Sequence record: LR756502.1
Length of the DNA stretch: 64,000 bases
Strand: one strand, 5' to 3'
The notes under the pieces are model-generated. The model did not search any database and was not told where the DNA came from. It saw only the letters and a program-made list of their open reading frames with translations. A program made the translations under genes and the position numbers. Shown here one piece after another: positions 13,051-63,091 of the stretch (within the stretch, counting starts at the first letter, position 1; the number at the start of each line of letters is the position of its first letter).

Positions 13051-13518
13051 ATGAAACACTTAAAGACATATAAACTATATGAATCCAACAATGAAGTATT
13101 AGATTATATTGGTGAGATATTACATGATATAGAAGATGATGGATTTGAAGTTAACTATTATGTTAATAGAAATTACACAATTAATATTGATATATCATAT
13201 CTATCACAAGATGGATATCAAAGCAAATTTCTAGGCATTGACCATGATAGAAAATCATTTAGTTGGACTGATATATCAGGATCAATAGAACATATATCGA
13301 GTTATTTAGAAGATTCATCATATGAATTCGTTGAGATACAATATTACTCAAGAACATCAAGGGATTATGTTATATGTGATGATATTAACGATATGGATGG
13401 AGAATCGATTGGAGCAGAATTGATGTTAGGAACATATGATTGTAGAGTAACATTTGGTACTAAATACGAAGCAAGGTCATTAAAAACTGGAAGCGGAGGA
13501 TACTTAACAGATATATGA
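13051..13518 (+). CDS. N-tagged DILxDLxDxG-family protein
   Basis: MKHLKTYKLYES; IGEILHDIEDDGFEV...FSWTDISGSIEHISSYL. Confidence 0.7.
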   Translation: MKHLKTYKLYESNNEVLDYIGEILHDIEDDGFEVNYYVNRNYTINIDISYLSQDGYQSKFLGIDHDRKSFSWTDISGSIEHISSYLEDSSYEFVEIQYYSRTSRDYVICDDINDMDGESIGAELMLGTYDCRVTFGTKYEARSLKTGSGGYLTDI

Positions 13519-13994
13519 AACACTTAAAGAGTTATAATGAATCATGGATGGATAGAGTTGAAGGACCTGACCCCTACAAGGATGAGGTGATGTCAACTAT
13601 CGAAGATATATTTATTGATGCTAAGGATAATGGTGTTAGGGTTGTTGTTAATAATCACGATGCTAATAAAGATGATATAGAGAATAAGGAAATATATATC
13701 TTCCTAGATAAATATGTAACTGAACATAAGAGTGAGTTACTTATGTCTGATGTTAGAGATTCATTTGAAAGACTTAAAGAATATATGATTGAGGAGAGTA
13801 TTGAATTTGATTATGCTTTATTTGAGTTAAAGACACTTAGATCTAAGATTGGTTCTAAGATAAGTGGTGGTGGTCCTAATCTTCGTATATCAAGTGGTCC
13901 TAATCTTCGTATATCAAATGATATTAAAGATTTTTTATGGGCTAGTCCATCAGTTATGTTTGGTCATATTAAAATAGTAGTGAAAATTAAATGA
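13515..13994 (+). CDS. N-tagged DILxDLxDxG-family protein
   Basis: MKHLKSYNES; IEDIFIDAKDNG; 24-bp tandem duplication at 13870-13917. Confidence 0.7.
   Translation: MKHLKSYNESWMDRVEGPDPYKDEVMSTIEDIFIDAKDNGVRVVVNNHDANKDDIENKEIYIFLDKYVTEHKSELLMSDVRDSFERLKEYMIEESIEFDYALFELKTLRSKIGSKISGGGPNLRISSGPNLRISNDIKDFLWASPSVMFGHIKIVVKIK
13870..13917 (+). repeat. Perfect 24-bp tandem duplication, in frame
   Basis: GTGGTCCTAATCTTCGTATATCAA x2, giving GPNLRIS twice. Confidence 0.95.
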
Positions 13995-14767
13995 AACACT
14001 TAAAACCATATAAAATATTTGAATCAAAGAAAGATATTAAAGATAGGATATCTGTTGTAAAGGATTTCCTAACAGAGTTAATTGATGAGGGATATTATAT
14101 TACTTTTGAAACTGTACAAAATGGTACAAGATTAATAGTAAATATAACTAAAGGTAACTCTACTATATTTCATTGGAGTGATATTAAGGATGAGATACTC
14201 AGATTAATTGGACTATCTGATGATAATGGATTAATCTTTAGACACATGGGATATAATTCAGGTAGGAATGTATTTGGTGATAAAGTTAATTCATTTGAAA
14301 CTGATGAGGATATGTTCCTTGTATATTTAGGATTTGATATTAACTATGATGATAAGGAGTTCCACTTAGATAGTGAATCAGTTGAGGACTATTTATATTC
14401 TCTTAGAGATAGTGGGTCTTCACCTATTAAAGAAAATGTTACGAACATTACTAGTGTAAGGGTAGAAACAACTAACCTATTTGTATCTGTACTAAGTAAA
14501 GAACATGAGATAATGGGTGTTGCTAATATGTATATCAGAGGTGATGGATATAGATGGGAAGATATTAAGAATGAATTGATTAAGATACAAGATACATTAA
14601 ATACGATGACTAGTAATTCTTATGTATTGAGAATAGGTAGAGTTAAGGATATATTAAGTAACTTATTAGTTGTACATGAGCATGTATCGAATACTATTGA
14701 TAATGTAGATTCTGAATTAAAGAATGGTAAAATAGCTGATATGGAAATAATAATAAGACATAAATGA
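13991..14767 (+). CDS. N-tagged DILxDLxDxG-family protein
   Basis: MKHLKPYKIFES; VKDFLTELIDEGY...FHWSDIKDEILRL; second RWEDIKNEL repeat. Confidence 0.7.
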   Translation: MKHLKPYKIFESKKDIKDRISVVKDFLTELIDEGYYITFETVQNGTRLIVNITKGNSTIFHWSDIKDEILRLIGLSDDNGLIFRHMGYNSGRNVFGDKVNSFETDEDMFLVYLGFDINYDDKEFHLDSESVEDYLYSLRDSGSSPIKENVTNITSVRVETTNLFVSVLSKEHEIMGVANMYIRGDGYRWEDIKNELIKIQDTLNTMTSNSYVLRIGRVKDILSNLLVVHEHVSNTIDNVDSELKNGKIADMEIIIRHK

Positions 14768-15135
14768 AACACTTAAAGAAATATAATGAGAATTTCTTAT
14801 ATGATAAGAAATTCTCCGAGAGATATGGTATCAATCTTCAAGAGCTTCAGGATATCTGTAAGTATATACTTCAGGAGTTAGCAGATGAGGGATATGATCC
14901 ATATGTTGTTGTAAATGATGATACTATTACAGTTAGTATAGATGGTGTGAATGATTATCAAGTATTCACTATTGAGGAGATGGAGGAACACATCAGTCGA
15001 TTGGAAAGATATATAGGAGAGTTTGGTTACAAAGAGTTAGCGGGTGTTGTCAATTGGAGAAAGTATGTGAGTGATCGTGCGCCCAGTGGAAATTTAGTAA
15101 TTATTTATAAGAGAACAGGAATCCCAAGTATATGA
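14764..15135 (+). CDS. N-tagged DILxDLxDxG-family protein
   Basis: MKHLKKYNEN; CKYILQELADEGY...ISRLERYI. Confidence 0.7.
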   Translation: MKHLKKYNENFLYDKKFSERYGINLQELQDICKYILQELADEGYDPYVVVNDDTITVSIDGVNDYQVFTIEEMEEHISRLERYIGEFGYKELAGVVNWRKYVSDRAPSGNLVIIYKRTGIPSI

Positions 15136-15566
15136 AACACTTAAAGAGATATAATGAATCAACATATAACCAAGTTGATATGGTCAATGACCTAAAGGAT
15201 ATGCTATATGATATGATTGACTTAGGCTTCTATACTAGAGTTAGTGAAGAGAAAGGTCTTATTACAGTTTGTATATCTAGGTCATTCCTTACATTAAGAA
15301 ATATTAAAGGGTTTATTAGAAGTGAGGAAGAGTTAAATGCTTTGAAGGAACTATTAACTAGGGTCAATGAATATGGCAAGTCTTGTGAGCATTTAGTTGA
15401 TAGAACATGGCTTGCTAGGGTAAATAATCTAAGTGATGGTTTAATGAGTGGGCAGTCTATGATGAAAACCCAGCTTAATTATGATTCCTTTAATAAGTTA
15501 ATGAATGATAATAGATGTACGATGTATATAACAATGTACCCTAAAAATAGCAGAAATGTTTTTTAA
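15132..15566 (+). CDS. N-tagged DILxDLxDxG-family protein
   Basis: MKHLKRYNES; LKDMLYDMIDLGF. Confidence 0.7.
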   Translation: MKHLKRYNESTYNQVDMVNDLKDMLYDMIDLGFYTRVSEEKGLITVCISRSFLTLRNIKGFIRSEEELNALKELLTRVNEYGKSCEHLVDRTWLARVNNLSDGLMSGQSMMKTQLNYDSFNKLMNDNRCTMYITMYPKNSRNVF

Positions 15567-15617: not shown

Positions 15618-16154
15618 ATGAAACACTTAAAAGGATATAAAGTATTTGAGGATTCACAACGTGAAAAGGATCTACAATGGGCAATAGATAATGGTTTTAT
15701 TGATCAAAATGATTCCGATAAAACTAAAGATATATTAGCCGACCTTATAGATTCAGGTTTCATAATTGATATAGATGGTGGTGCTGAATCCCTTCTTACC
15801 GTTAGTATTAGTAAATCAGATGATACTCGTGATTTCCCAGAAGACTTTGATGATGATGGTGAAAGGTTCTCGAATAATGATTTTGAATTTACATACGATG
15901 AAGTTAAACCAGATATTGATGAGTTGATTAGTCAGTTATCTGATAAGTATCCAAAATATAGTATCTACTTAACACCATCTGGTGGGTATGATTCTCAAGA
16001 TATGGATGAGTTTATATCCAATAGTTTTTCATTAGATGATATATCAAGAGTAATAATATATTTTTACAGGGGATTTTCTGCAGAATCGATAGAGGGAATA
16101 GTATGGCCCCAGAGCTATTTAACCACGTTAAAACCTTTACCATTTAAACCTTAA
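15618..16154 (+). CDS. N-tagged DILxDLxDxG-family protein (acidic)
   Basis: MKHLKGYKVFED; TKDILADLIDSGF; TAATATATA at 15602-15610. Confidence 0.7.
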   Translation: MKHLKGYKVFEDSQREKDLQWAIDNGFIDQNDSDKTKDILADLIDSGFIIDIDGGAESLLTVSISKSDDTRDFPEDFDDDGERFSNNDFEFTYDEVKPDIDELISQLSDKYPKYSIYLTPSGGYDSQDMDEFISNSFSLDDISRVIIYFYRGFSAESIEGIVWPQSYLTTLKPLPFKP

Positions 16155-19519: not shown

Positions 19520-20068
19520 ATGAAACACCTAATCCAATATAAAATATTCGAAACCAAGGATATTTCTTCTGAAGTTAGACAGACAATTAATGATATGTCA
19601 CTAGATCTAATAGATAGTGGACTCATAGCTAACATAGAAACATATTTCGTGCACTTCCCCGAAACATGGGTGAACGGAAGGTATGTGCGTAGTGGAACTT
19701 TACATCCTTCTGAAAGAAGTGGATATTGTTTTGTTGATATTATAATATGGAAACATAAAGGTGACTATCTTCATATCCCATATACCCTTGATAGAGAGTG
19801 TATTGATTTCCTACTAAGTCTAAATAGTTATATGTTATCAAATGAATATAAACTAAAAAATGTAACCATAAATACTGGTGGTTCAGAACCAAATCTACAC
19901 GTTAGTCACGCTAAAGTAATTGAATATGATAAGCGACCATTTGCTGATGTGAAATTGACTATTATCGATAATATTGAGAAACTATATACTGAAACAGTTG
20001 AAGAAGTATCGATTTGTTTCTTTGGCTATTCCGGAACATCCCCAAACTATAAGGATCCCAACAATTAG
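19520..20068 (+). CDS. N-tagged DILxDLxDxG-family protein
   Basis: MKHLIQYKIFET; INDMSLDLIDSG; TAATATATA at 19504-19512. Confidence 0.7.
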   Translation: MKHLIQYKIFETKDISSEVRQTINDMSLDLIDSGLIANIETYFVHFPETWVNGRYVRSGTLHPSERSGYCFVDIIIWKHKGDYLHIPYTLDRECIDFLLSLNSYMLSNEYKLKNVTINTGGSEPNLHVSHAKVIEYDKRPFADVKLTIIDNIEKLYTETVEEVSICFFGYSGTSPNYKDPNN

Positions 20069-20621: not shown

Positions 20622-21692
20622 CTATATATTAACCTCAATATTATCATATCCAGTTATATCCTTTAGAGTCTTTAATACCTTATCATTAACCTCCTGTTCC
20701 ATATCCTCAGTAGATTCTCGTGAACTTAATCCAAAAATATAAAATATATCATTGTGATTATTCATAACATGCTGAAAGTTCTTAGGGAACTTCCTATTAT
20801 AGGCAAATCGGTCGATTTGGTGATTGAATCCACCAAATGCAATACTTTCATGTTCGAGAGGCCTTATCCCTTTAATGGTTACTCGGTAATATAAAGTAAA
20901 TCCATCATCAATAGCATCTAACGATAAGTCTTTTAGTTTATCTATTAATTCAAAATCAATCCTATCCTTTACAATTGGTTCTACACTTTTCCATAGACTA
21001 TCTGTAATCTCCATATCCTCATCACTTATACCATCAAATGATACATCTCCCCATTCTATACTATATCCATTATCATCTTCATAGTAAATACCATTTGAAT
21101 ATAATGGATATAACCATCCTGTTTCTGAATCAAGAACATGACCAATGCTATTTAACTTTATCCAATTTGATGGTATTAATTTACCATGTTTTTCTGATTC
21201 GAATAACTTATTATCAACTGATTCAGATATATTCTTTAGTTTTTTATCTATAAATATTTCAATCCGCATATTTTGTATATCACCTGATGGTAATGGAAGT
21301 GCGGTTCTGATATTAGTCCACGGATCATCCTGCAATACATCTAAAATAGTTTCCTTAAATACACCTTTATCATCATGCCATTGATATTGAATGTCATACT
21401 TTATTCGATCCATATCAAAATAACTTTTCATTCTATCAGTAAACGTTAATATTCTATCAGCATCAAATGTCTCTCCTGTAAGCGCCGAGGGGGTAAATTT
21501 ACTTGGGGATGTTTGACGATCAATAGATATAGAAATCATATTATCAAATCTATCTATGCTCATTGATTTTACCTTAACCTCAAATCCATCATCTTCGAAG
21601 TCTAATAACATATCCTTAATATAGGTAGTTACATCAGCGAGAGAATATCCACTATTGGATTCAAATATTTTATATCTCTTTAAGTATTTCAT
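20622..21692 (-). CDS. N-tagged two-module protein
   Basis: MKYLKRYKIFES; IKDMLLDFEDDGF; internal NKLFESE; second module similar to 41861-42517 (IG.V.D..TG.LY; KDLSL...DDG). Confidence 0.7.
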   Translation of the reverse strand: MKYLKRYKIFESNSGYSLADVTTYIKDMLLDFEDDGFEVKVKSMSIDRFDNMISISIDRQTSPSKFTPSALTGETFDADRILTFTDRMKSYFDMDRIKYDIQYQWHDDKGVFKETILDVLQDDPWTNIRTALPLPSGDIQNMRIEIFIDKKLKNISESVDNKLFESEKHGKLIPSNWIKLNSIGHVLDSETGWLYPLYSNGIYYEDDNGYSIEWGDVSFDGISDEDMEITDSLWKSVEPIVKDRIDFELIDKLKDLSLDAIDDGFTLYYRVTIKGIRPLEHESIAFGGFNHQIDRFAYNRKFPKNFQHVMNNHNDIFYIFGLSSRESTEDMEQEVNDKVLKTLKDITGYDNIEVNI

Positions 21693-21704: not shown

Positions 21705-22223
21705 TTAATCACTGAAGTATAAAATTAAAGATAACATATTCTTATTCATTATTTCATCACTTAGTAAAGCATCAAGGTCTTTATAATAGAGATAATTTGG
21801 ATAATCATTACCATAATTGACTTGTCTACTTGCCCATACATGGTCTAGCTTCAATCCTTTTTCCTTCAATAGATAATCTATCGGGAATTTCAATTCATTA
21901 ACAAATGTATTAATATCCATTTTATATTTAGGTTCATTAATTAATGAGTGTGATACTATGGGACTCTTTGTAATAAAGATTCGTATAATAGGATAGGTTG
22001 GATTATCTAGGATATGAAACGGAATACTACCCATATTTTTATATTTAGAAACATCTTCTCTACCATGATACATGATAGGTTTGTCAAATTTAATGCTCCT
22101 AGTCAAGTCTTTCGTGACAGTTACGAAGTAGTGTTCATCAGATAGAGGATAGAATAACTCTTCTATCTCTTTCATATCAGTTACATCACTAATATTCTCA
22201 TTATATCTTCTTAAGTATTTCAT
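21705..22223 (-). CDS. N-tagged DILxDLxDxG-family protein
   Basis: MKYLRRYNEN; IEELFYPLSDEHY. Confidence 0.65.
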   Translation of the reverse strand: MKYLRRYNENISDVTDMKEIEELFYPLSDEHYFVTVTKDLTRSIKFDKPIMYHGREDVSKYKNMGSIPFHILDNPTYPIIRIFITKSPIVSHSLINEPKYKMDINTFVNELKFPIDYLLKEKGLKLDHVWASRQVNYGNDYPNYLYYKDLDALLSDEIMNKNMLSLILYFSD

Positions 22224-22666
22224 TTTATAATTAGGTTGTCTTGGTTTTTAAATATAAGTTTTATTGAAATAAATACTATTGTCCAGATATCATTTGAGTT
22301 GGGAATAAACCCATCTTTGTAAGTGAAGTGGTTGTTTGCTGATGAGTATAGTTTAATATCTCCTAGTATAAATCTATCATTTAAATACTCCATCATTCTT
22401 TCTATATCTGGTCTTGCCTCTACCCATTTAAACTTCAATGATCCTGTATCAAAAGGACTTGGGTGGAAACTAAGACGTGGTTGTGGTGAGTCTCTTTTAT
22501 CAATAGTTATCTCTATACCCATAGGGTCATGTATTTTACCTATCAATACTTGATAGTCATCATCGAGTAGATTAGCTAATAGTTCTTTTATTTCATTTTG
22601 TAGATCACCAAACCAAATAAAGGGATTACCCTCTTCAAATATTTTATATTTCTTTAGGTATTTCAT
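22220..22666 (-). CDS. N-tagged DILxDLxDxG-family protein (start revised to 22666)
   Basis: MKYLKKYKIFEE; IKELLANLLDDDY...FKWVEARPDIERMMEYL. Confidence 0.7.
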   Translation of the reverse strand: MKYLKKYKIFEEGNPFIWFGDLQNEIKELLANLLDDDYQVLIGKIHDPMGIEITIDKRDSPQPRLSFHPSPFDTGSLKFKWVEARPDIERMMEYLNDRFILGDIKLYSSANNHFTYKDGFIPNSNDIWTIVFISIKLIFKNQDNLIIK

Positions 22667-23577
22667 ATCTTTTTGATCCAATGAATATTGATCCAGGTAA
22701 TTGAATCATCACCTAATGACTTCTCTAAATCATTAAATTTAATACATCTGGCTGTATTAGCATCTTGTAATTCTAGTTTATCAATTACAAATCCATTCTC
22801 CAATAGAAATGAATTTAGGTGGTCTAAGGAATGATTAACATCTTTATAATTAATTCTAACATTTCTCCTATACACAACTGTATTATCCAATTCATCATAG
22901 TCATCATCCTCAAAGTCCTCTGGTAGATCACCATTATCTATGAGAACCTGAGACACCATAGGTATTGACTCTCCTAGTTTAGACATCCTTATGGAAACTT
23001 TACAAACACCACCATATGCTCTAGATCTAATGTTGCCACCATTCTCACCATTCCGTATACTAAGGTCAACTATTATTCCATTATCTCTCATATCAGATAT
23101 AATGTCTTCAGTTGTGTTTACAATCTCAAGATTCTTTTCTACGAATTCTTTAACCGAAATATCGTAGTTGCTCTCGAATAATTTATATGCTTTTAAATAT
23201 TTCATATTTTCTTCTATTAGATGCTTATTTACATCCCACTTAACCTTACTAACAAATTGCGCCTTGTATTGATAACCATCGAATCTATCAGATCCTTTCT
23301 TCTCATATCCAAGTGGTTCTAAATAAGCTGATAGTCTACTGATGATATCCTCTAAATCTTTCCTTATATAACCACTAGGTTTATTTATATAAACATAGAT
23401 GGATAACATACCTCGACAAGGCATTGTTTCAACTTCAGTGTGAAATCTATTCTTACTATCATCCCAATTATCATCTGATAATTCTAATAGTATATCTTTA
23501 ATAGTTTGTACTGTTTCTATAACACCATCTCTATCAAAATGATTCTCAAATATCTTATACTTCTTTAAGTGTTTCAT
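22663..23577 (-). CDS. Fusion of two N-tagged family proteins
   Basis: MKHLKKYKIFEN and an in-frame internal MKYLKAYKLFES (ATG at 23205). Confidence 0.75.
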   Translation of the reverse strand: MKHLKKYKIFENHFDRDGVIETVQTIKDILLELSDDNWDDSKNRFHTEVETMPCRGMLSIYVYINKPSGYIRKDLEDIISRLSAYLEPLGYEKKGSDRFDGYQYKAQFVSKVKWDVNKHLIEENMKYLKAYKLFESNYDISVKEFVEKNLEIVNTTEDIISDMRDNGIIVDLSIRNGENGGNIRSRAYGGVCKVSIRMSKLGESIPMVSQVLIDNGDLPEDFEDDDYDELDNTVVYRRNVRINYKDVNHSLDHLNSFLLENGFVIDKLELQDANTARCIKFNDLEKSLGDDSITWINIHWIKKI

Positions 23578-23594: not shown

Positions 23595-24008
23595 TTAAGT
23601 GTTTAATATTCTTCCTTTGAACTCAATTTCATATTGCCTTTCCTTCTGTGCTCCGGTTGAATCAAGTCCACCACAAATATAGTCACTAGTGCGTGTTTTG
23701 GTAAGCCCTTCTAATTCAAGATACTTCTCTAACCTATTACTAACACTCTCTACGTCCGATAAAACAAATTTATCTTTATCATTTCTTATATGAATTTTTA
23801 TTAATGTTAGTGGCCAAGCAAACGATGAGGTGTCAAATTCAACACTAGTGAAATATTTATCATCTGTTAGATCAATTAATATATCATAACATGTTATTGA
23901 TATTTGCTGTGTATGATTGTAATTCTGGTGCGAAAGGACGATCATTTCGTTTCTTTTTGAATACTCTGATTTTGATATAGATTCATTATATGTCTTTAAG
24001 TGCTTCAT
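23595..24008 (-). CDS. N-tagged DILxDLxDxG-family protein
   Basis: MKHLKTYNES; CYDILIDLTDD...RLEKYLELEG. Confidence 0.7.
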   Translation of the reverse strand: MKHLKTYNESISKSEYSKRNEMIVLSHQNYNHTQQISITCYDILIDLTDDKYFTSVEFDTSSFAWPLTLIKIHIRNDKDKFVLSDVESVSNRLEKYLELEGLTKTRTSDYICGGLDSTGAQKERQYEIEFKGRILNT

Positions 24009-25108: not shown

Positions 25109-25149
25109 AACATTATATATTAATATATAATGTTATGAAACATTTGAAG
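25094..25149. repeat. Perfect 56-bp palindrome spanning two divergent gene starts
   Basis: CTTCAAATGTTTCATAACATTATATATT|AATATATAATGTTATGAAACATTTGAAG. Confidence 0.95.
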
Positions 25150-25572
25150 CTATTTGAAAGTTTTCCTTATACCGATGACGAATTGGTATATAGAGAGATG
25201 ATACAATGCTGCAAAGATATTCTTCTAGAATTAGAAGATGATGGTATAAATACTAGAATACAGGGAAATGCAAAAAGATATACCTGGATATCACTTTTCT
25301 TTTTTAGAGAAGAAAAATTCACTTATTCAGATATAGAAAGTGTTGTTGAAAGATTAAAATCATATTTATCTGAATATGGTTTAAGTGTAAAATGGATGAG
25401 TCCGGATGAAAGAAATGAGAATAAACCCACAATTAAAACAATACCAGTACAGAACCCAACGAATCTCAAAGGCCAACTCTTACCATCAAAGACATCCATC
25501 CCAACTCTTGTTCCGATTATTGTGTACAAGGAATTGCTGATTTTACACCACATAAATGGAAAGCAGAGCTAA
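25135..25572 (+). CDS. N-tagged DILxDLxDxG-family protein
   Basis: MKHLKLFES; CKDILLELEDDG...FTYSDIESVVERLKSYLSEYG. Confidence 0.7.
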   Translation: MKHLKLFESFPYTDDELVYREMIQCCKDILLELEDDGINTRIQGNAKRYTWISLFFFREEKFTYSDIESVVERLKSYLSEYGLSVKWMSPDERNENKPTIKTIPVQNPTNLKGQLLPSKTSIPTLVPIIVYKELLILHHINGKQS

Positions 25573-25632: not shown

Positions 25633-26316
25633 TTAGTTTATTAATTTCTTTAATCTATCCAAAGACTTATTTAATTCTACTCTCCCTAATATCATATTGT
25701 TTACGATGTATGGTGGTTTTCCTGATGAGCTGGACCCAAGTCTATAAAGTAAGAGGTTTGCATTTGTGAAAAACTCAACATGACTAACATCACCACCTTT
25801 TCCTAATTTTGATTTTAACAGATCTGATCCTATTTGAAGTTCGGTTCTATTGACTTTAAAGTCAGATGAATATTCTTGCATTACAAACATATCATCTGAA
25901 TAGATATCTCCTTTGCTATTATATCTAGAACCAGATGCCATATCTGCACATGGACAGAATACTATTTTTGAATTATCAAATGGTATAACTAGGTAAACTG
26001 CTGAGTTATTTTGACCAAACACACCAGCATGTAAAGGAGAAGTTGAACCAATAATACTTTTATATCTTGGTACTGGATAATCTTTTCTCTTATTAAAGAA
26101 GTCGTGATATCCGTATGATGATCCATATGTTCCTTCTCTCTCAGTCTCTTTGTATAAAGCATACTCACCTATTTCACCACATCCTCTATATAACATATCA
26201 TTATCAAAGTTAAATTGAGTGCAGTTTTTCTTGAAGATATCAAGAAACTCTTCTTCTGTTAAAGGAGATGTTCTTGTTTTATTTTCAAATAATTTATGTG
26301 GTGTTATATGTTTCAT
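25633..26316 (-). CDS. N-tagged ADP-ribosyltransferase-like protein
   Basis: MKHITPHKLFEN; LYRG, GSTS and HVEFF consistent with the R-S-E ART signature. Confidence 0.55.
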   Translation of the reverse strand: MKHITPHKLFENKTRTSPLTEEEFLDIFKKNCTQFNFDNDMLYRGCGEIGEYALYKETEREGTYGSSYGYHDFFNKRKDYPVPRYKSIIGSTSPLHAGVFGQNNSAVYLVIPFDNSKIVFCPCADMASGSRYNSKGDIYSDDMFVMQEYSSDFKVNRTELQIGSDLLKSKLGKGGDVSHVEFFTNANLLLYRLGSSSSGKPPYIVNNMILGRVELNKSLDRLKKLIN

Positions 26317-28052: not shown

Positions 28053-28439
28053 ATGAAATACTTGAAGAGATATTATGAATCCACTGAAACTTCCTTCAAT
28101 AAAGAAGACTTGGAATTTATATTCGCACATTCGTTTGATGTTGCTGATGATCATGGTATAGATGAGGTATATTTTAATCCGAATGATTTAGAAGAATGGG
28201 CACATAATGATTTCAGTAACCCAGATAGTTCATCACATCCAGTCACTTGCATCACCGGATATGAAGTGTCATTTCACCACGAATTTTATGATGAGTCTTC
28301 ATTAGAAGATTTTGAAAAGTATTCTAACTTAATAGCTGAGATTAAATCTGACATAGAAAGATTCAAAGGCATGTATAATGTGGGTGGTATATTCTTTTTT
28401 ATACATGATTCAATATTAAGATTAATAATAAGACCATGA
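28053..28439 (+). CDS. N-tagged acidic protein
   Basis: MKYLKRYYES. Confidence 0.65.
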   Translation: MKYLKRYYESTETSFNKEDLEFIFAHSFDVADDHGIDEVYFNPNDLEEWAHNDFSNPDSSSHPVTCITGYEVSFHHEFYDESSLEDFEKYSNLIAEIKSDIERFKGMYNVGGIFFFIHDSILRLIIRP

Positions 28440-28897
28440 AACATCTAAGAAGATATAATGAGAGTTTTAGAACAGATGATATAAAATCAAGTGAATCAGC
28501 GTTCTATCAATCCAATCTTCTTGGTGGAAAACAAACATTATCTCCAATTTGGCATGAACTTGCTCAAGATATAAAACAAACATTAGATGATATTGCAATA
28601 GATTTAAGAGATGATGGATATAATGTGAGTGTTAATGCGGCACAAAGAGCTTCTTATAGCAAAGATAAGTATATGATAGTAATGAATGTCTCTCTTGGAA
28701 TGAAACCACCTAGCTATGCCACACATATACCATTTGCTGTTAAAGATGTTGCACCAACACTCAGAAGAGTGGAAAGTTATTTAACTACACTAGATTTGGT
28801 AGATAGATATGATTACTTCATACATAGAACATATGATAGCATTGATGAGATAACTCCACTCTGGGTTGATGGTCTATCAATTAGAATATTTTTATGA
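28436..28897 (+). CDS. N-tagged DILxDLxDxG-family protein
   Basis: MKHLRRYNES; LDDIAIDLRDDGY...LRRVESYL. Confidence 0.7.
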   Translation: MKHLRRYNESFRTDDIKSSESAFYQSNLLGGKQTLSPIWHELAQDIKQTLDDIAIDLRDDGYNVSVNAAQRASYSKDKYMIVMNVSLGMKPPSYATHIPFAVKDVAPTLRRVESYLTTLDLVDRYDYFIHRTYDSIDEITPLWVDGLSIRIFL

Positions 28898-28947: not shown

Positions 28948-29358
28948 ATGAGACATTTAAAATCATATATAATATTTGAATCTAATACAGGCTTTTATTG
29001 TTCTCCTATATTCAAAGATACATTCTGTGATATATCTGATGACCTACCGGTAAATATAAATTATTCTGATTCTGAATTACCTGGATACCAAGGGAAGATT
29101 GTAATAACGCATGAGTTAAATACGGCTCGTGTTGATTACTTCCAAAAAAAATTAGACCTATTTAAATTGCTTCCTATTATGAAAAGTAAAATTGGATATC
29201 TAAAGGAAGAAGGATTTGACTTTGATATTAGTTTAAGTTTTCTTACTGGAAGAAGTTCATCAGAACATAGTTGGTATTTATCAAGTTTTAATATAAATGA
29301 CTTAGAGCCTCAAGTTATATATGGCACTTATAAAATTTTAATTTACATATTTAAATGA
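28948..29358 (+). CDS. N-tagged family protein (start revised to 28948)
   Basis: MRHLKSYIIFES; FKDTFCDISDD. Confidence 0.65.
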   Translation: MRHLKSYIIFESNTGFYCSPIFKDTFCDISDDLPVNINYSDSELPGYQGKIVITHELNTARVDYFQKKLDLFKLLPIMKSKIGYLKEEGFDFDISLSFLTGRSSSEHSWYLSSFNINDLEPQVIYGTYKILIYIFK

Positions 29359-29933
29359 AACACTTAACTACATATAAAATATTTGAATCCGTTAGAGATA
29401 TATCACAATATATCTCCGATATATTCACAGATCTAACGGATGAAGGATATGAAGTGGAAGTATATGATACCGACCCAAATCAAAAATTAAAACCAACTGG
29501 TCGTGGGGTTACATCACCAACTATCTATATTCCTAATCATGGTAACTATACAGATGCAACTACTATCTATATAACCAAATTACATGAAAAGGATGGTACT
29601 CTTTATAGAGACAATTTTAACACAAATGATATTAGATCATATGTTGATTGGTTGTGTAAGTATATGAAATCGGAAGGATTTACTAATTATTGGGCATGGG
29701 TAGAGGTGGATAAGAATATCCCTGTTATACCACATAAATCTGATAAGTTTTATAACTTGGTTCACTATGATAATGGGGTAACTTGGAATGAAAAGAAGGG
29801 TAAGTGGGTTTCTCATGGTCTACTTAGAAAAACGTTTAATAAGATAAAGGATAGAATAGCTAATGAGAAGATATTACCAAAGAACATATTAACTGAAAAT
29901 GTTAAATTGGTATTTGCTAAAGATAATAAATAA
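29355..29933 (+). CDS. N-tagged DILxDLxDxG-family protein
   Basis: MKHLTTYKIFES; ISDIFTDLTDEGY. Confidence 0.7.
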   Translation: MKHLTTYKIFESVRDISQYISDIFTDLTDEGYEVEVYDTDPNQKLKPTGRGVTSPTIYIPNHGNYTDATTIYITKLHEKDGTLYRDNFNTNDIRSYVDWLCKYMKSEGFTNYWAWVEVDKNIPVIPHKSDKFYNLVHYDNGVTWNEKKGKWVSHGLLRKTFNKIKDRIANEKILPKNILTENVKLVFAKDNK

Positions 29934-29940
29934 TAAGGAT

Positions 29941-30426
29941 ATGAAACATATAAAGAAATATAAGATATATGAGAATGATTCCGTTTCTGGTCAGATTGTG
30001 TCTGATATAAAGGACATCCTTAGGGATTGTGAGGACCTTGGGTTATCAATAAGTATAGATTTTGGTCGTTTTTTAAAAAAGTCTGGATATCTAGTTACAA
30101 TTAACTCGGTGCCTCGAAGATATAATATTCCTGCTAAGGTTCAGTTTAAAGATATATTACCTAATATTCAACATCTTATTAGTTATATGGATAGTGTCGG
30201 ATATAATAATTTTAATTATGTAGATACTGTATCGGGGTTTAATAACTACTATAAAATTGTTAGAGATGAGTGGCTTGGTGAAGATGTTCCACGCATTGCC
30301 TCTGAGGGTGAAATTAATAACATATTACCCAGTGTTGGTAGTGATAGTGACTCCATGATGTTTGCGCCTGCTGTTGGTAAGAAATTGTTTGTTGGTTTTG
30401 GTAAAATGATATTCTTTAAAGGGTGA
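29941..30426 (+). CDS. N-tagged DILxDLxDxG-family protein (start revised to 29941)
   Basis: MKHIKKYKIYEN; IKDILRDCEDLG...IQHLISYMDSVGY. Confidence 0.7.
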   Translation: MKHIKKYKIYENDSVSGQIVSDIKDILRDCEDLGLSISIDFGRFLKKSGYLVTINSVPRRYNIPAKVQFKDILPNIQHLISYMDSVGYNNFNYVDTVSGFNNYYKIVRDEWLGEDVPRIASEGEINNILPSVGSDSDSMMFAPAVGKKLFVGFGKMIFFKG

Positions 30427-30953
30427 AACACTTAAAGACATATAAATTATATGAATCTTATAAAAAACATCTATCCTTATCGTTAGATATTGCTAAAGAG
30501 ATATGTCTTGACTTAGAAGACGATGGATATGATGTAACTATAAATACAATCAGTGAAGTTCCTGATTGGGCGAAAGATTATATAGATAAAGGAATGAAAG
30601 TTACACATAAGCATCAGAATATAATTATTGAGATATCTAAGTTACGTAGTTACTTTGAGTATGATGATATTAAAGATACAGTCGAAAGATTGATTAATGT
30701 AATAGGACAAGGAGAGTTAGTTGATGATAAATTAAAAGGAAGAAATGGATTCAAACTAACCGATTACCCAGGATGGGGAGATGTTACTAAATATGTACCT
30801 AAAGTATATCACTATTGGAGATCAGATAGACATAGAGGTGGGTTATTTAATATACCTGGGATAGGATCTATGTGGGTAAAGAAAACAACAACCAAAGATG
30901 ATGATATCGAAAGATGTTTAAAATCTGAAATTAAATTAGTATTTACAAATTAA
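30423..30953 (+). CDS. N-tagged DILxDLxDxG-family protein (GTG start)
   Basis: MKHLKTYKLYES; ICLDLEDDGY...FEYDDIKDTVERL. Confidence 0.7.
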   Translation: MKHLKTYKLYESYKKHLSLSLDIAKEICLDLEDDGYDVTINTISEVPDWAKDYIDKGMKVTHKHQNIIIEISKLRSYFEYDDIKDTVERLINVIGQGELVDDKLKGRNGFKLTDYPGWGDVTKYVPKVYHYWRSDRHRGGLFNIPGIGSMWVKKTTTKDDDIERCLKSEIKLVFTN

Positions 30954-31749: not shown

Positions 31750-32273
31750 GGCACTTAAAGAAATATAATGAATCTACTAAGAACCCGGATGCTCTTCTCC
31801 AAGAAGCTGAATTTGTAAAAAAAGCAGAAGAAGAAAAAAAGGTATTGTCATCAATTAAAAGTGATGTAGAAGATATTTTATTAGAAGTATCTGATGAGGG
31901 ATTTTATACTCAAGTATCTATAAACAGATGGCATAAGAATGAACCATTCTTTACATATGGTGGATTACGAGATGGGTGGATTAGTGAGGTGAGATATAGT
32001 ATGGTTATCAATATAGTTAAGGAGGGATTAAAGCCAGGTCAGCCAATGCTTGGTAATACCAACTACTTTGATATTAATACAATAAAAGAACCTCTTATTA
32101 GATTGGAAGGATATGTTAAGGATAATCTACCTGGGTATAAAATGGAATATGATAATTCTGTGAATAGGGAGGCTTGGAAAGAAAATAGAATATTTTACTT
32201 ATCGTTAGTGACGGTAATTATTGATAGTTATAACGATGGTGTCCTTCCATCAAATTCACTTAGGATGATATAA
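31746..32273 (+). CDS. N-tagged DILxDLxDxG-family protein (start revised to 31746)
   Basis: MRHLKKYNES; VEDILLEVSDEGF. Confidence 0.7.
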   Translation: MRHLKKYNESTKNPDALLQEAEFVKKAEEEKKVLSSIKSDVEDILLEVSDEGFYTQVSINRWHKNEPFFTYGGLRDGWISEVRYSMVINIVKEGLKPGQPMLGNTNYFDINTIKEPLIRLEGYVKDNLPGYKMEYDNSVNREAWKENRIFYLSLVTVIIDSYNDGVLPSNSLRMI

Positions 32274-54210: not shown

Positions 54211-54714
54211 TTAAAATACTACTTTTTCTGATATTGGGAATGTATTTATTAAATTAGTGAAGAATATCATGCTAGCATTATCGTTTATGAAGTACATTAC
54301 AAATACATATGATGGATTTCCGTTTTCATCCATTTGATCTTCATTAACATCGATTATAATCTTAATATTTTCATATTCTCTATCATTGTCTGTAAATTTA
54401 TACAATCTACCAGGTATATGCCTCCAATCACCTGTCTTCCTTATTTTTTTTAAATATCCAAGGAATACAAGGCTTTCCTCACCCTTATCTATCCCGATCA
54501 TTTCATGTTTGGTACTATCTCTAAAGGCGATTATATTACCTAACTTAAATGTATCTGTCATATCGATTATGGTATCTTTACCTCCTTCGGTTTTACCAGT
54601 CAACATGACGGTATTTATTTTAAATGAAATGGCATTTATTGATTTTGGAATAAACTGAGCAAGTACTGAATTTGCTACTAATATAAGCATTAGAGTTATT
54701 TTGAATGTTCTCAT
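54211..54714 (-). CDS. Exported beta-rich protein
   Basis: Signal MRTFKITLMLILVANSVLAQ. Confidence 0.6.
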   Translation of the reverse strand: MRTFKITLMLILVANSVLAQFIPKSINAISFKINTVMLTGKTEGGKDTIIDMTDTFKLGNIIAFRDSTKHEMIGIDKGEESLVFLGYLKKIRKTGDWRHIPGRLYKFTDNDREYENIKIIIDVNEDQMDENGNPSYVFVMYFINDNASMIFFTNLINTFPISEKVVF

Positions 54715-54732
54715 TTTTTATTATTATTTATA

Positions 54733-54740
54733 CAAATATA
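54733..54740 (-). promoter_or_regulatory. Bacteroidota-type TAnnTTTG promoter
   Basis: TATATTTG on the minus strand, upstream of 54714. Confidence 0.6.
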
Positions 54741-54781
54741 AGAACTATAATCCAATTATACTAATTTTATATATAATATTA

Positions 54782-55264
54782 ATGAGACATATAAAGTATT
54801 ATAGGGGTTTTGAGTCAACGTCATTAAAAGATGATATTTTGTTATATGTTCGTGATATACTTTCCGATATTTCTGATGATGGGTTTGGTATTGAGTTTAG
54901 TATTAAAAGTATGATGCCTACAAAGTATGTATCATCTAGACTAATGCCTAGTAGGGTTAAGGATTTTAGTGTTAGAATATCAGCTCCTATTAGTCCAAAA
55001 TTGAAATTTAGTAATGATTTTAAATTTGGTGATGTTAGTGGGTGTATAAATCATCTAATATCATTCATGGCAGATAATGGATATAAACAAGGTGGTATTT
55101 ACTCTGATTGGACTGGTGTCTGTCCAAGTGAGAAATCACATGCTTATAAAGTATTTACTGCAGACCGTGGTGATAAACTCATTTATCTGAATATTGATAG
55201 TCTTAATTCAGATAGTATAATATCAAACTATATAGAGATTTACTTTTATAATAAGGTGCTTTAG
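54782..55264 (+). CDS. N-tagged DILxDLxDxG-family protein (start revised to 54782)
   Basis: MRHIKYYRGFES; VRDILSDISDDGF...FKFGDVSGCINHLISFMADNGY. Confidence 0.7.
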   Translation: MRHIKYYRGFESTSLKDDILLYVRDILSDISDDGFGIEFSIKSMMPTKYVSSRLMPSRVKDFSVRISAPISPKLKFSNDFKFGDVSGCINHLISFMADNGYKQGGIYSDWTGVCPSEKSHAYKVFTADRGDKLIYLNIDSLNSDSIISNYIEIYFYNKVL

Positions 55265-56355: not shown

Positions 56356-56658
56356 ATGAAACAATCAAGTTGGTTTAAAACGGAAGTGGACTTTGAAAGT
56401 TCTTTCAAGTTCTGGTTCGCACTTATGTGGCAAAATTCATATATTCAACTTTTCTCTGTTGGATTCATCTTATTACTTATGGAGTTAATAAAATTTGGAT
56501 GGGTATTGGATACTGTATCTGAAAATTTCTCATATGGTGTTTTTGGTGGTATCTTCACACTATTAGGAATGGTTATACCACTTGCGGTTACTTCAGTAAT
56601 TGGGTATAAGGGATTTTATCAATTTTGGAAAGATATAAAATTTGGAAAAACTAGATAA
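56356..56658 (+). CDS. 2-TM membrane protein
   Basis: Two hydrophobic helices; TAATATATA at 56324-56332. Confidence 0.65.
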   Translation: MKQSSWFKTEVDFESSFKFWFALMWQNSYIQLFSVGFILLLMELIKFGWVLDTVSENFSYGVFGGIFTLLGMVIPLAVTSVIGYKGFYQFWKDIKFGKTR

Positions 56659-57272
56659 TGAGAAATATTAAATCATATAAAGACTTCGCTAATGAGGAAG
56701 TAAACTGGAGAAAAGGAATGGCAACCGCTGCTCTAGGCGCATCACTTGCTATGTCATCCCCATTGATTGCAAACGGTAATGAAATTATTGATAAGATTGA
56801 AAATGTGTCAAGTAAATCAAAGAACTCAAATGATGATATGTTGAATAACATATTGGGTGAGATACATTCAAATATTAAAAGTACTGATAGTGCTAAGTAT
56901 ATTGAGTTATTTGATAAGTTATCATCACATCTATCCAAAGAGTATGGTTATGAGATAATTGCTAGGGATATTCCTAAGTTGGATAAAGAGACTATGTCTG
57001 ATATGAGCTTAGCTGAGTTAATGGGTTGGTTGGGTTCTATTTGTTTAGCTATATGTGGTGTCCCACAAGCTTGGATGTCCTATAAGGATAAACATTCTGA
57101 AGGAATTTCTTGGGCCTTTATTCTATTATGGGCTTTTGGTGAAGCATTTGCTTTGGCTTATGTGTATAATAAGTTGGATTTGCCTTTAGTTATGAACTAT
57201 CTAACTAATATTTTGATTGTTGCTATTATACTTTATTATAAGATAAATCCAGGCAAGAAGTCGGATTTATAA
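56658..57272 (+). CDS. N-tagged PQ-loop (SemiSWEET-like) membrane protein
   Basis: MRNIKSYKDFANEE; C-terminal GWLGSICLAICGVPQAWMSYKDKHSEGISWAFILLW... 3-TM PQ-loop unit. Confidence 0.8.
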   Translation: MRNIKSYKDFANEEVNWRKGMATAALGASLAMSSPLIANGNEIIDKIENVSSKSKNSNDDMLNNILGEIHSNIKSTDSAKYIELFDKLSSHLSKEYGYEIIARDIPKLDKETMSDMSLAELMGWLGSICLAICGVPQAWMSYKDKHSEGISWAFILLWAFGEAFALAYVYNKLDLPLVMNYLTNILIVAIILYYKINPGKKSDL

Positions 57273-58153: not shown

Positions 58154-58597
58154 ATGAAATATCTATGTAGATACAAAGTATTTGAGTCCTTCAATGAAGA
58201 CCCGTCATCTGATATTGCATTGGAGGTAAAGGATGTACTGTGTGATTTGATTGATGATAATTACTTTACAGTAAATGTCGCATATAACAAATTAGGTGAT
58301 ATAAACCTTATAATAAGTATTTATAAGGAGGGGTTTAAGAGGTTTAAATGGACTGATAGTTTAAGTGATGAAATATTGGTTAATCTCAAATCTCACTTAT
58401 CGGATAGGTACTCAATAAAATCTATTAGAGGTATTATTGAAGTTGATGCAGTATTAAATGGTAACGGAGATTCATATAATCCTGTTAAAGAGTTTACGGT
58501 ATATTCATCCGGATATAGCCCTGATCCCGACTCATATAACTTTGATTTTTTTGAGATTGATGTGTATTTGGCGGAGAATAAATTACTCTCCGCCTAA
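58154..58597 (+). CDS. N-tagged DILxDLxDxG-family protein
   Basis: MKYLCRYKVFES; VKDVLCDLIDDNY...FKWTD. Confidence 0.7.
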   Translation: MKYLCRYKVFESFNEDPSSDIALEVKDVLCDLIDDNYFTVNVAYNKLGDINLIISIYKEGFKRFKWTDSLSDEILVNLKSHLSDRYSIKSIRGIIEVDAVLNGNGDSYNPVKEFTVYSSGYSPDPDSYNFDFFEIDVYLAENKLLSA

Positions 58598-60874: not shown

Positions 60875-61393
60875 ATGAAGTACATAGAACTATTCGAAAG
60901 ATTTTATAACCCAAGTAAAGATATAAAAGATAAATTAGACTCTATAATTAAAGATTTATTGAATAGGTATAAGGGAGGTAAGTCGTTTTTTGATGCTCTT
61001 GATGATTCTATAAAGGATATAACTAATCAGGATATGACTCTTGCTTTATTAAGGGGTAATACAAATGAGTGGATTGCAACATCCGGTGAGTTTGGTGATA
61101 CGATATATAAGCTATGGAAGTCTGGTAAGTTTAGGTGTAAGGGTTTGGTTGTATTTAATGGTAAGATGATGACAAATGAAATTGGTATTAATAATTGGTA
61201 CCCAATTGACTTTGAATTAGATAATAAGGAGTTTTTATATGTAGATGACTCTTATTTCTCTGGCAGTACTGCTAGAAAAATTGATAACTTCCTAAGTGAG
61301 TATAACTCAAGAGTTAAAAGCATATCTGTTATATATGATGGATCCAAGGAAAAAAATAAAATGGTTAAGTCCTTTTTTAGATATTATAAATGA
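60875..61393 (+). CDS. N-tagged type I phosphoribosyltransferase-like protein
   Basis: MKYIELFER; FLYVDDSYFSGSTA matches the PRPP-binding loop. Confidence 0.7.
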   Translation: MKYIELFERFYNPSKDIKDKLDSIIKDLLNRYKGGKSFFDALDDSIKDITNQDMTLALLRGNTNEWIATSGEFGDTIYKLWKSGKFRCKGLVVFNGKMMTNEIGINNWYPIDFELDNKEFLYVDDSYFSGSTARKIDNFLSEYNSRVKSISVIYDGSKEKNKMVKSFFRYYK

Positions 61394-62259
61394 AATACTT
61401 AAATAAATATAAATTATTTGAGTCAGAACAATCTTATTATGATAGAATTGAGGCTGAACAAGAAGAACTTAATAAATTCAAATATGGATCTGTTAAGGTT
61501 TGGGCTAAAGAGATATATGATAAGTTTAGAAAAGTAGAGTCTGAGATTGCATCAAAGATGATAAATGTTGATGGATCTGAGGTCTATCTGGCTAATAATT
61601 CACAACATTCTATAAAACTTGGATTCGGACGTAGCTATACTAAACTGAACTCTCTTATAGATAAATATAAAACCGCAGAAGGTCTTATATCCTATCTAGA
61701 AAAGGCAAATGATGAGATTAATAACATAAGAAAATCACTCGAAGGCCGATGGGATTATATTTCTAGAAAGAATGGTAAAAAAGGAACATCTGATGAGTAT
61801 GATAAGATAAAAAGGATGAGAGAGTTGATGGATGATTTTCAAGAACCATGGTCTATTTACAGAGAGCTAAAACAAGTTGACTTGGACATTTATCATGATA
61901 TTCTTTGGATGGTATCTGATTTAGCTGATGATTTAGATATGGAATCTGCAATTTCACACCTTGAGTTATGGAGAGGACTCGATATTCAATTAATTATGTT
62001 TAAGAAAGGAACCGAACCATATATTGAATGGGTGGTCGCGAATCATCAACAGACCACAAAGGGTAATATTAGTTTTAGAAAACTTGGATCTCTCTATACA
62101 AATGTATTTCTATCTAATATAATTATACCTGAGGATGAATTTAATAAAGTTTATGATATTGAGAATAGATTAAAACAATACTTCGATTCTGTTACAATAA
62201 GATATTCTCATAATAGATCTTGTATCTATATTAATCTCTGTAATCAAAAGGACATATAA
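61390..62259 (+). CDS. N-tagged helical protein
   Basis: MKYLNKYKLFES; coiled-coil-like N-terminal half. Confidence 0.65.
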   Translation: MKYLNKYKLFESEQSYYDRIEAEQEELNKFKYGSVKVWAKEIYDKFRKVESEIASKMINVDGSEVYLANNSQHSIKLGFGRSYTKLNSLIDKYKTAEGLISYLEKANDEINNIRKSLEGRWDYISRKNGKKGTSDEYDKIKRMRELMDDFQEPWSIYRELKQVDLDIYHDILWMVSDLADDLDMESAISHLELWRGLDIQLIMFKKGTEPYIEWVVANHQQTTKGNISFRKLGSLYTNVFLSNIIIPEDEFNKVYDIENRLKQYFDSVTIRYSHNRSCIYINLCNQKDI

Positions 62260-62552
62260 TGAAATACTTAAATACATATAAATTATTTGAGAGTATCTCC
62301 AAATATCCTGATGGGTTTGGTCGGTATTTAGATAACGATGATATACAAGATTCTCTTCAATATGATATAGGTGACATGGTTTGGGTTAGAGATTGGAGTG
62401 ATGTGCCATGTCAGGTTATGGATATAAAGGTTGGTGTGGATGTGTCTGGTAGTCCACACAATGAAATATTAGTATACTTTTACTATGTTAGAAATTCAGA
62501 GACAGAAGAAATAGAAAGGTTTAGATCATTTAAATTAAGTGAAATAGAATGA
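62259..62552 (+). CDS. N-tagged KOW/SH3-like protein
   Basis: MKYLNTYKLFES; YDIGDMVWV. Confidence 0.65.
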   Translation: MKYLNTYKLFESISKYPDGFGRYLDNDDIQDSLQYDIGDMVWVRDWSDVPCQVMDIKVGVDVSGSPHNEILVYFYYVRNSETEEIERFRSFKLSEIE

Positions 62553-63091
62553 AGTACTTAAAGACATACTCCTTATATAAAATACTTGAGAGCACTTTAA
62601 CAGATGTTAATTTTCCAAATGCTGAGGAAAAAATAAAAGACATATTGTCATATTTGATTGATGATGAGTTTTCTATAGATGTTGACTCTTATGAATTGGG
62701 TGAGTTCCAAAGGCTGCCATCCAGAATTTTATTAAACATACCAGAGTCTATAACTCAAAACATGGAATGGGATCCACTACCAATTCTAGTTATTATTATT
62801 GAATATTTTGATAATCAAGTGGAAACACAAAGAACATTCACAATTGATGAAATTGACCAACACATAAAAGAGTTAATTAATCAAATGAGTGATGATTATA
62901 CATTTTTTCAATATTGGAAGTCTTATTCAGAGAGTACTAATTTAAATTTAAAATTAATTGGTGATTATTCTAAATGGTGTTCAAATATTGATAAGGTGTC
63001 TGAAGGTGATGATTGTGAGTTAAACTACATAAGACTAGAATTTATAAAAAATACTAATCTAGTGTCAAAATCCACAAATTCCATCCAATAA
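62549..63091 (+). CDS. N-tagged DILxDLxDxG-family protein
   Basis: MKYLKTYSLYKILES; IKDILSYLIDDEF...FTIDEIDQHIKELINQM. Confidence 0.7.
   Translation: MKYLKTYSLYKILESTLTDVNFPNAEEKIKDILSYLIDDEFSIDVDSYELGEFQRLPSRILLNIPESITQNMEWDPLPILVIIIEYFDNQVETQRTFTIDEIDQHIKELINQMSDDYTFFQYWKSYSESTNLNLKLIGDYSKWCSNIDKVSEGDDCELNYIRLEFIKNTNLVSKSTNSIQ

Follow-up and report, generated by a model that had tools for sequence, protein, structure and literature searches.

The first 64,000 nucleotides of LR756502.1 (bases 1–64000 of an unannotated, uncultured phage record of 642,428 bp; hereafter the window) encode a family of small, highly diverged alpha/beta domains, carried by proteins that typically start with one recurring leader peptide of 11–12 residues. 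Two findings are new and solid: the large, uncharacterised alpha/beta family itself, and a linear motif that is present on 93 proteins of this phage, is kept between tandem domains and adjoins the probable head protease. The explanation that we favour, tentatively and at somewhat less than even confidence, is that a clade of huge phages with low guanine-plus-cytosine (GC) content and T4-type heads has a leader-peptide system by which labelled proteins would be packaged into the capsid and processed there, and that the family is its largest class of cargo.

LR756502 belongs to the huge 'Mahaphage' group, originates from a French freshwater lake and has LR745206 and Mar_Mega_1 as sister genomes (PMC9723777, PMC7162821, PMC11165621); its predicted host phylum is Bacteroidetes (PMC7162821). 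Window bases 13001–38000 match LR756502.1 at identical coordinates with 100% identity. The GC content lies at about 30%; the window, which contains no N, is densely filled with small open reading frames (ORFs), some 45–50 of which start with the leader. The remainder of the genome, which holds about 967 genes in total, was scanned as twelve separate pieces, each singly. Literature searches on the leader letters, on paralogue families of huge phages and on capsid-targeting sequences of jumbo phages returned no account of the family or the leader.

A diverged alpha/beta domain family

The original prediction had described about 30 diverged paralogues of one domain in this region. An iterative profile search of the window ORFs, with leader-like N-termini masked, converged on 27 ORFs with 30 domain copies (domain E-values of 1.6e-21 to 9.3e-6), to which three borderline, leader-bearing ORFs can be added (21705..22223, 41861..42517 and 44127..44954; E 0.026–0.13), so the predicted number was right. 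When the leader was masked in an all-against-all phmmer comparison, 21+3 window ORFs were still linked. All but one of the 27 member ORFs lie within 13051–63091, the remaining one being the leaderless ORF 295..810. The ten coordinates that had been given as examples all belong to family members, with the specification that 35553..36029 is encoded on the minus strand and that 54782 corresponds to a Met within ORF 54701..55264. Proteins with two copies, also foreseen, are clear in three cases, and a weak second copy is found in 13991..14767 and 30967..31749. Across the whole genome the count rises to 41 domain ORFs (44 copies), 34 of which are located in the first 100 kb.

Paralogues compared in pairs are approximately 14–31% identical, and conservation is concentrated in two helices. 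Column counts over the 30 copies bear out both helix motifs that had been read from the sequence. Helix 1 is marked by Asp (25 copies), Ile (22), Leu (23), Asp/Glu (26), Leu (17), an Asp that is invariant in all 30 copies, Asp/Glu (22), Gly (24) and Phe/Tyr (20); helix 2 is marked by Phe (22), Asp/Glu (23), Ile/Val (21), Arg/His (22), Leu/Val (25), Tyr/Phe (22) and Leu/Met (20). The loops between the helices are hypervariable, as predicted, with a column entropy above 3 bits and insertions of up to 22 and 40 residues. Members share a common layout: the leader, a variable linker of about 10 residues, and one to three domains of approximately 70–100 residues.

Four further, small paralogue sets appeared in the all-against-all comparison (3679-3978/7068-7319/20299-20520; 4265-4588/50591-50935; 42885-43721/47531-48049; 45490-45948/53849-54154). 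The proteins of the 42885/47531 pair contain a helix that resembles helix 1 of the family, with an internal leader in 42885..43721, and this pair may represent a still more diverged branch.

The fold was modelled for one member, the protein encoded at 25135. Its AlphaFold model has a predicted local distance difference test (pLDDT) score of 70.5 overall, with 85–94 for residues 11–40 and 77–93 from there on to residue 90. It consists of a helix (14–35), two strands (41–45 and 49–55), a second helix (64–79), a strand (83–87) and a C-terminal strand (128–132). A second AlphaFold run, based on a 79-row alignment, gave a pLDDT of 58 with an unchanged order of elements and was not used for fold searches. 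The model suggests a simple helix–strand–strand–helix–strand sandwich; that other members share it rests on profile homology. Conserved positions map to the hydrophobic faces of the helices, to Gly–aromatic helix ends and to an acidic stripe on helix 1, and no feature resembling a catalytic site was seen among the conserved domain positions or in the model. The notion of a conserved scaffold with variable surfaces is thus supported by the column statistics and by the model of the 25135 protein, and we infer a binding scaffold with variable loops.

Comparisons with known proteins were largely empty. Ten proteins (seven members and three leader-bearing non-members) gave nothing below E 0.02 against Pfam; against PHROGs, the same ten yielded no significant match for a member, a single strong match for a non-member (25633..26316; 2.9e-6) and otherwise weak single matches. 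Searches with 32 units gave no match in NCBIfam and single matches at E>=1e-3 in PADLOC. The family profile matched no chain among the Protein Data Bank (PDB) sequences, and Foldseek searches of the 25135 model against PDB and BFVD gave nothing at E<=0.001. The PADLOC and structure searches spoke neither for nor against the two functions suggested in the original prediction, a set of anti-defence binders or decoys and a heteropolymeric inner-capsid body.

Distribution and turnover of the arrays

A leader-free profile of the 30 copies gave 1,377 matches at E<=1e-3 in a set of 1.84 billion representative proteins, 108 of them at E<=1e-10, which shows that the family is not a product of chance. 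Many of these proteins contain two or three domain copies, and among the 147 matches listed, nearly all begin with the leader. In a word-seeded search, the 25135 protein has many metagenomic relatives of about 129 residues, most at 44–56% identity and all unnamed. Related contigs of 41–150 kb carry similar arrays of leader genes, with small ORFans on the flanks. A degenerate leader DNA pattern matches 78 contig stretches in IMG/VR (contigs of up to 476 kb, median GC 29%), and the alpha/beta domain is present in just 12 of the 158 leader ORFs at these loci. The leader is therefore more widespread than the domain, which is just one of several classes of cargo. A search of IMG/VR with the conserved subfamily found one locus, and a tblastn search of 50,697 phage records with two members, which is too insensitive for this family, found the source record only. 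In the genomes of 185,579 species, the conserved subfamily has no convincing bacterial copy; the two matches obtained are shorter than 30 residues and come from metagenome-assembled genomes.

These results bear on the possibility that the arrays are immunity or antitoxin-like genes, like those beside polymorphic toxins of Bacteroidota, which the phage would have taken up for the protection of the cell it infects. Such a role would suit small alpha+beta proteins that are encoded in long arrays of variable content, and it would suit the predicted Bacteroidetes host (PMC7162821). However, the scan of bacterial genomes with the conserved subfamily gave no more than the two short matches, Pfam, NCBIfam and PADLOC gave no significant match, and no toxin genes were recognised beside the arrays, so that we regard this explanation as very improbable.

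Related contigs have few array genes in common, despite flanking genes that are 78–89% identical in DNA. For array orthologues that can be paired, the ratio of non-synonymous to synonymous substitution rates (dN/dS) is 0.34–0.41, within the range of neighbouring genes (0.06–0.62). Positive selection, for which the original prediction had proposed a check, was ruled out for these orthologues at the gene-wide level at which the check was run. The picture suggested by these sequences is one of turnover through gain, loss and fusion, with each gene under purifying selection.

The N-terminal leader

In LR756502, the leader is found on 93 ORFs, approximately 10% of the genes, and its pattern occurs just twice beyond residue 40 in 190,000 residues. 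It consists of a basic/aromatic head and a tail that ends in Phe-Glu-Ser or, in a second common form, Asn-Glu-Ser. Codon usage was counted in those 29 leaders of the window that a permissive pattern picked up. The start codon (position 1) is ATG in 27, GTG in one and TTG in one. Position 2 is Lys (25), Arg (3) or Asn (1); position 3 is His (16; CAC 10, CAT 6), Tyr (12; TAC 7, TAT 5) or Phe (1); and position 4 is Leu (24; TTA 18, CTA 5, TTG 1) or Ile (5). Position 7 is Tyr in all 29. At the end of the leader, position 10 is Phe (25) or Tyr (4), position 11 is Glu (28; GAA 14, GAG 14) or Asp (1), and position 12 is Ser in 19, written with all six codons. Nearly all positions vary in their synonymous codons, which indicates that selection acts on the peptide and not on the DNA and rules out the leader as a DNA-level recombination or expression module.

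The leader is also found on proteins outside the family. In LR756502 these include an HNH nuclease (window 11122..11700 (+)), a T4-type lysozyme with a membrane segment, a Toprim-like protein, NUDIX, cyanophycin-synthase-N-like and DUF6576 proteins, a PQ-loop membrane protein with a leader-like N-terminus (window 56658..57272 (+)) and many ORFans. In relatives, proteins with Pfam marks for an OmpA-like protein and an S-adenosylmethionine (SAM) methyltransferase carry the leader as well. A separate leader-bearing family has a membrane-spanning segment directly after the leader (LR756502 95990-96634(-) and 544849-545472(-); related contig L021 11415-12056). Some relatives have a longer leader, with about 10 extra residues between the basic/aromatic head and the Phe-Glu-Ser tail (contig L001 8064-8459, 8848-9597 and 10356-10820; L021 9576-10004), which fits a leader of two separable parts.

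The behaviour of these two parts in multi-domain proteins is informative. The two family searches gave 122 relatives with two or more domain copies. In their internal linkers, [FYNL]-Glu-Ser is found in 67 of 137 cases (49%), against 24 of 948 control windows (2.5%; p=1.5e-47). Its median distance from the domain that follows is 10 residues, which is the spacing seen at the N-terminus. The head is kept in just 11 of the 137 linkers. The retention of Glu-Ser together with the loss of the head suggests that the tail does its work away from the N-terminus too, like a cleavage site that separates fused units, and that the head is needed once, as an address would be.

Could the leader lack a function at the protein level, being a copied start module or a set of translation-favouring first codons in a neutral or selfish tandem expansion? 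The genes are arranged in tandem, often with 4-nt overlaps, a promoter-like motif (described below) stands 13–16 nt before many starts and implies very short 5' leaders, and the second codon is AAA in 25 of the 29 leaders. Against this stand the synonymous variation at most leader codons, the selective retention of Glu-Ser in internal linkers, and the purifying selection on orthologues (dN/dS as above). The leader is moreover kept inside operons and across 1,377 clusters in which the domains have diverged to approximately 20% identity, and 161 leaderless genes use the same promoter motif. We give such an explanation little chance.

Head genes, a probable protease and promoter-like motifs

LR756502 encodes a T4-type portal protein (222545..224260; Portal_T4 1.3e-57) and a T4-type capsid protein (227452..229167; Gp23 3.7e-28). 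Between these genes lies an ORF of 699 residues (225272..227371), which is probably a gp21-type protease-scaffold protein judging from its sequence. It matches a profile of eight annotated giant-phage head proteases (1.4e-5); its protease domain keeps 11 of the 19 columns that are invariant in those eight, including a His and a Ser; and its close homologues carry a precomputed PF03420 mark. The rest of the protein is repetitive and scaffold-like, with about 11 tandem copies of a unit of about 13 residues in the middle. In single-sequence phmmer searches, the protease, sheath and terminase of SPN3US found no relative in LR756502.

The tail of the leader reappears in this protein. Asn-Glu-Ser stands directly after the protease domain (residues 166–168) and is present in 120 of 120 homologues, and two more copies lie near the C-terminus; the protein also has one Phe-Glu-Ser. 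The genome-wide background of Asn-Glu-Ser is 0.3 per 1000 residues. The head proteases of T4, phiKZ, 201phi2-1 and SPN3US all cut C-terminal to Glu, giant-phage head proteases cut off their own C-termini, and the targeting leaders of T4 are 10–20 residues long (PMC5694885).

The window holds 26 copies of a 9-base AT-alternating motif where 13.7 would be expected, and nearly all of them stand 13–16 nt before a start codon in the orientation of the gene (for example at 12518-12526, 15602-15610, 25114-25129, 34137-34145 and 44113-44121). Its 8-base form is present upstream of 199 of 967 genes genome-wide: it precedes 42% of leader genes versus 18% of other genes, lies 13–30 nt upstream of the portal, protease, capsid and baseplate-spike genes, and is also found before two giant ORFs that bear collagen and carbohydrate-binding module (CBM) domains. 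The motif resembles a phage promoter, from which mRNAs with very short leaders would start. A second class of motif, T-rich with a TTTG core, stands upstream of 62 genes, including a Dam methylase gene and one leader-bearing gene (examples in the window precede 6431, 38924(-), 49521(-), 54714(-), 60799(-) and 63620(-)). This class is host-like and may mark genes read by the host polymerase, that is, early genes. The HNH nuclease gene mentioned above has both classes upstream.

A proposed model of packaged, processed cargo

Taken together, these observations can be arranged into a model of packaged and processed cargo. Leader genes would be expressed from the type of promoter that also serves the head genes. 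The head of the leader would then attach the protein to the core of scaffold and protease in the prohead, much like the capsid-targeting sequence of T4, after which the gp21-type prohead protease would cut behind the conserved Glu of the leader, and also wherever Glu-Ser is kept between tandem domains. Once released, the domains would stay in the capsid and enter the cell together with the DNA. With a common scaffold, member-specific loops and no catalytic signature, the domain most likely works by binding, and the most likely use of the family would be as a panel of early-acting binders of host or defence proteins.

Several observations weigh against this model. For the protease, the match of the first ~160 residues to Peptidase_S77 (4.6e-4) is below the Pfam cut-off (20.2 vs 27 bits), the N-terminal 200 residues matched nothing among PDB sequences, and the 120 homologues are all at least 82% identical, which makes the conservation of the boundary site weak evidence. 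The N-terminal region of the capsid protein has no strict [FYNL]-Glu-Ser site. The AT-alternating motif, found at 199 genes that include a DHH-family gene, may not be specific for late genes, and a structural role could also account for the fixed distance from Glu-Ser to helix 1. Family members are mildly acidic (median isoelectric point 5.2), and 93 leader proteins would be far more cargo than in any studied phage, some of it (the PQ-loop integral membrane protein, the NUDIX protein and the methyltransferase) looking unsuited to a capsid. The phage's own ClpP and Clp ATPase could be an alternative reader of N-terminal signals. Finally, cleavage, packaging, ejection and binding targets are all inferred from sequence.

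Some of these points speak for a rival reading, in which the proteins never enter the virion and the leader is an intracellular signal for processing or turnover, either as a pro-peptide for a Glu-specific protease or as a degradation tag for ClpP and its ATPase, with the domains acting in the cytoplasm as host-takeover or anti-defence binders of controlled lifetime. The phage encodes a canonical ClpP (window 58607-59281 (-); Pfam 1.6e-77) and a two-ring Clp-type ATPase (LR756502, about 436-475 kb), which together would form a complete phage-borne Clp protease. Ordinary proteins of the cytoplasm and membrane, such as the NUDIX, methyltransferase and PQ-loop proteins, are among the cargo, 10% of the proteome is much for a capsid, and the genes lie among small ORFans, as is typical of accessory regions. 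However, a signal that needs a free N-terminus leaves the retention of Glu-Ser in linkers that have lost the head unexplained. The same element flanks the domain of the head protease, and leader genes avoid the host-like promoter motif and use that of the head genes. An intracellular signal is the strongest of the rivals, albeit an unlikely one.

A different variant keeps the packaging and changes the purpose: the proteins might be structural, making up a heteropolymeric inner body, or extending the scaffold, so as to organise the 642 kb of DNA, with no role after ejection. The evidence for packaging is the same as for the cargo model, inner bodies and paralogous families of head proteins are known from giant phages (PMC5694885), and the helices, conserved in all members, could serve a contact that all of them share. 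One would expect a core structural part to be retained, though, whereas just 12 of the 158 leader ORFs from IMG/VR have the domain, and array content differs between contigs with 78–89% identical flanks, leaving few recognisable orthologues. Hypervariable loops also argue against such a role, which we consider improbable.

Packaged, processed cargo remains our preferred model. In its boldest form, one 11-residue leader would serve as a clade-wide address label that loads about a tenth of the proteome, including dozens of alpha/beta binders with variable loops that are made as cleavable tandem 'polyproteins', for delivery with the DNA; this is possible, though on balance doubtful. If it is true, the labelled proteins would be a repertoire of injected effectors that exceeds that of any studied phage by an order of magnitude, and the family (1,377 clusters with no name or structure) would be the chief scaffold of injected effectors in a phage group widespread in fresh and salt water. 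Such a family would be a binder library made by nature, with host defences perhaps among the targets, and would help to explain part of a 642-kb genome in which some 10% of genes are labelled. Should the leader both direct proteins to the capsid and mark where they are cut, genome sequences would suffice to list the protein cargo of uncultured huge phages in this clade, and possibly in others.

Members and neighbouring genes in the window

Single-domain members with a leader make up most of the family; for these we give the position, the domain in residues (aa) and the domain E-value, all on the plus strand unless marked. The list opens with 13051..13518 (aa 18–91; 3.5e-18) and 13515..13994 (aa 28–94; 6.3e-13), the start of which overlaps the preceding stop by 4 nt. 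It continues with 13991..14767 (aa 23–73; 2.4e-12), where the weak second copy (aa 131–196) is not significant, 14764..15135 (aa 30–89; 1.5e-17), 15132..15566 (aa 21–81; 1.7e-11) and 15618..16154 (aa 36–109; 5.7e-15). Further along, 19520..20068 (aa 21–110; 1.8e-13) has a long loop insertion. Upstream of all these lies the leaderless member 295..810 (+), with its domain at aa 78–144 (5.1e-16).

A group on the minus strand contains two of the clear two-domain proteins. In 20622..21692 (-), domains at aa 24–72 (1.5e-10) and aa 253–302 (9.3e-6) follow the leader, and a Phe-Glu-Ser element is left in the linker. In 22663..23577 (-), two leader-plus-domain units (6.7e-15 and 6.9e-13) are fused in frame, with a second, complete leader from aa 125. 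Between them lie the borderline ORF 21705..22223 (-; E 0.026) and 22220..22681 (-; 8.4e-15), whose leader Met is 5 codons into the ORF; 23595..24008 (-; aa 39–101; 2.6e-16) follows.

The modelled member, 25135..25572 (aa 24–82; 1.6e-21), is followed by 28436..28897 (aa 48–118; 6.8e-17), 29355..29933 (aa 18–109; 5.9e-16) and 29899..30426 (5.3e-16), where the leader Met is codon 15 and the likely start is 29941. Next are 30423..30953 (aa 22–92; 6.3e-16), with a GTG start, 30967..31749 (aa 17–84; 6.4e-15), with Asn-Glu-Ser in the linker before its weak second copy, and 31740..32273 (aa 43–129; 1.2e-11). The third clear two-domain protein, 34154..35059, has domains at aa 19–98 (1.1e-10) and aa 178–238 (7.1e-15), with a decayed leader between them. 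It is followed by 35065..35556 (aa 45–111; 7e-14), 35553..36029 (-; aa 27–97; 5e-15) and 36113..36490 (aa 19–75; 7.1e-13).

The remaining members are more scattered: 39909..40379 (aa 18–103; 9.3e-19), 54701..55264 (5.4e-14; leader Met at codon 28, likely start 54782), 58154..58597 (aa 25–84; 2.3e-11) and 62549..63091 (aa 29–115; 1.4e-13). The other two borderline ORFs, both leader-bearing and on the plus strand, have the helix-1 motif at about aa 93–121 (41861..42517; E 0.044) and aa 25–56 (44127..44954; E 0.13).

Accessory genes among the arrays encode, in order, a D12-class adenine methyltransferase (38031-38924(-)), a riboflavin kinase (38954-39598(-)), a gamma-glutamyl cyclotransferase-like protein (42539-42883(+)) and a c-type cytochrome (57267-57716(-)); the gene of the PQ-loop membrane protein mentioned above lies among the arrays as well. 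Elsewhere in LR756502, a co-oriented block at 436-466 kb was considered as a set of structural genes and ruled out, since it consists of sugar and polysaccharide genes together with the Clp ATPase. Its approximately 30 kb (436611-466220) contain co-oriented genes for sugar-nucleotide and polysaccharide metabolism, namely epimerases, aminotransferases, several glycosyltransferase families and methyltransferases; NAD synthase and the small chain of ribonucleotide reductase were also matched at 436-477 kb.

Comparison with known systems

In its fold, the modelled member comes closest to the small binding domains of the ferredoxin-like plait. The model is likewise a two-layer sandwich in which two helices pack on a small antiparallel sheet, and among its weak matches in Foldseek are YajQ, a designed plait and a circular permutant of ribosomal protein S6. 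The order of elements in the model, helix–strand–strand–helix–strand, is by contrast a permutation of the classic plait, and with a best PDB match of E 0.11 and a template modelling (TM) score of 0.33 (best TMq 0.33–0.38 at E>=0.1, against a threshold of about 0.5), relatedness is not established.

The original prediction had likened the arrays to the internal-protein locus of T-even phages. This analogy has gained from the gp20-, gp21- and gp23-type head genes of LR756502, which T4 likewise has, from a leader ending in Glu, and from the same element at the protease boundary and in linkers; as an explanation it is unproven. T-even internal proteins are highly diverse and have only the capsid-targeting sequence in common (PMC3012670). 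As with IPI, IPII, IPIII and Alt of T4, a short leader is common to small proteins that are unrelated or highly diverged and encoded at a plastic locus (PMC3012670), it ends at a Glu, the position cut by gp21-class proteases (PMC5694885), and the cargo consists of enzymes and small binders. The two systems differ in scale, with 93 leader genes and 41 ORFs of one domain family here versus a handful of genes in T4, and in form, as tandem multi-domain 'polyproteins' and an acidic family are features of LR756502. The family also has no sequence or fold similarity to solved structures (PDB profile search; Foldseek E<=0.1), and its cleavage and packaging are putative.

A second parallel is offered by giant phages. 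The paralogous ejection proteins of SPN3US have identical N-termini (PMC5694885), and SPN3US gp53/gp54 and the phiKZ gp93 family resemble the present system in that diverged paralogues keep (near-)identical N-termini with a protease motif (PMC5694885). In the head they are an abundant cargo, with processing after Glu (PMC5694885). These proteins are larger, however, with propeptides of up to ~125 residues and an Ala/Ser/Gly-x-Glu motif, whereas the leader of LR756502 has 11–12 residues and carries Phe or Asn before the Glu.

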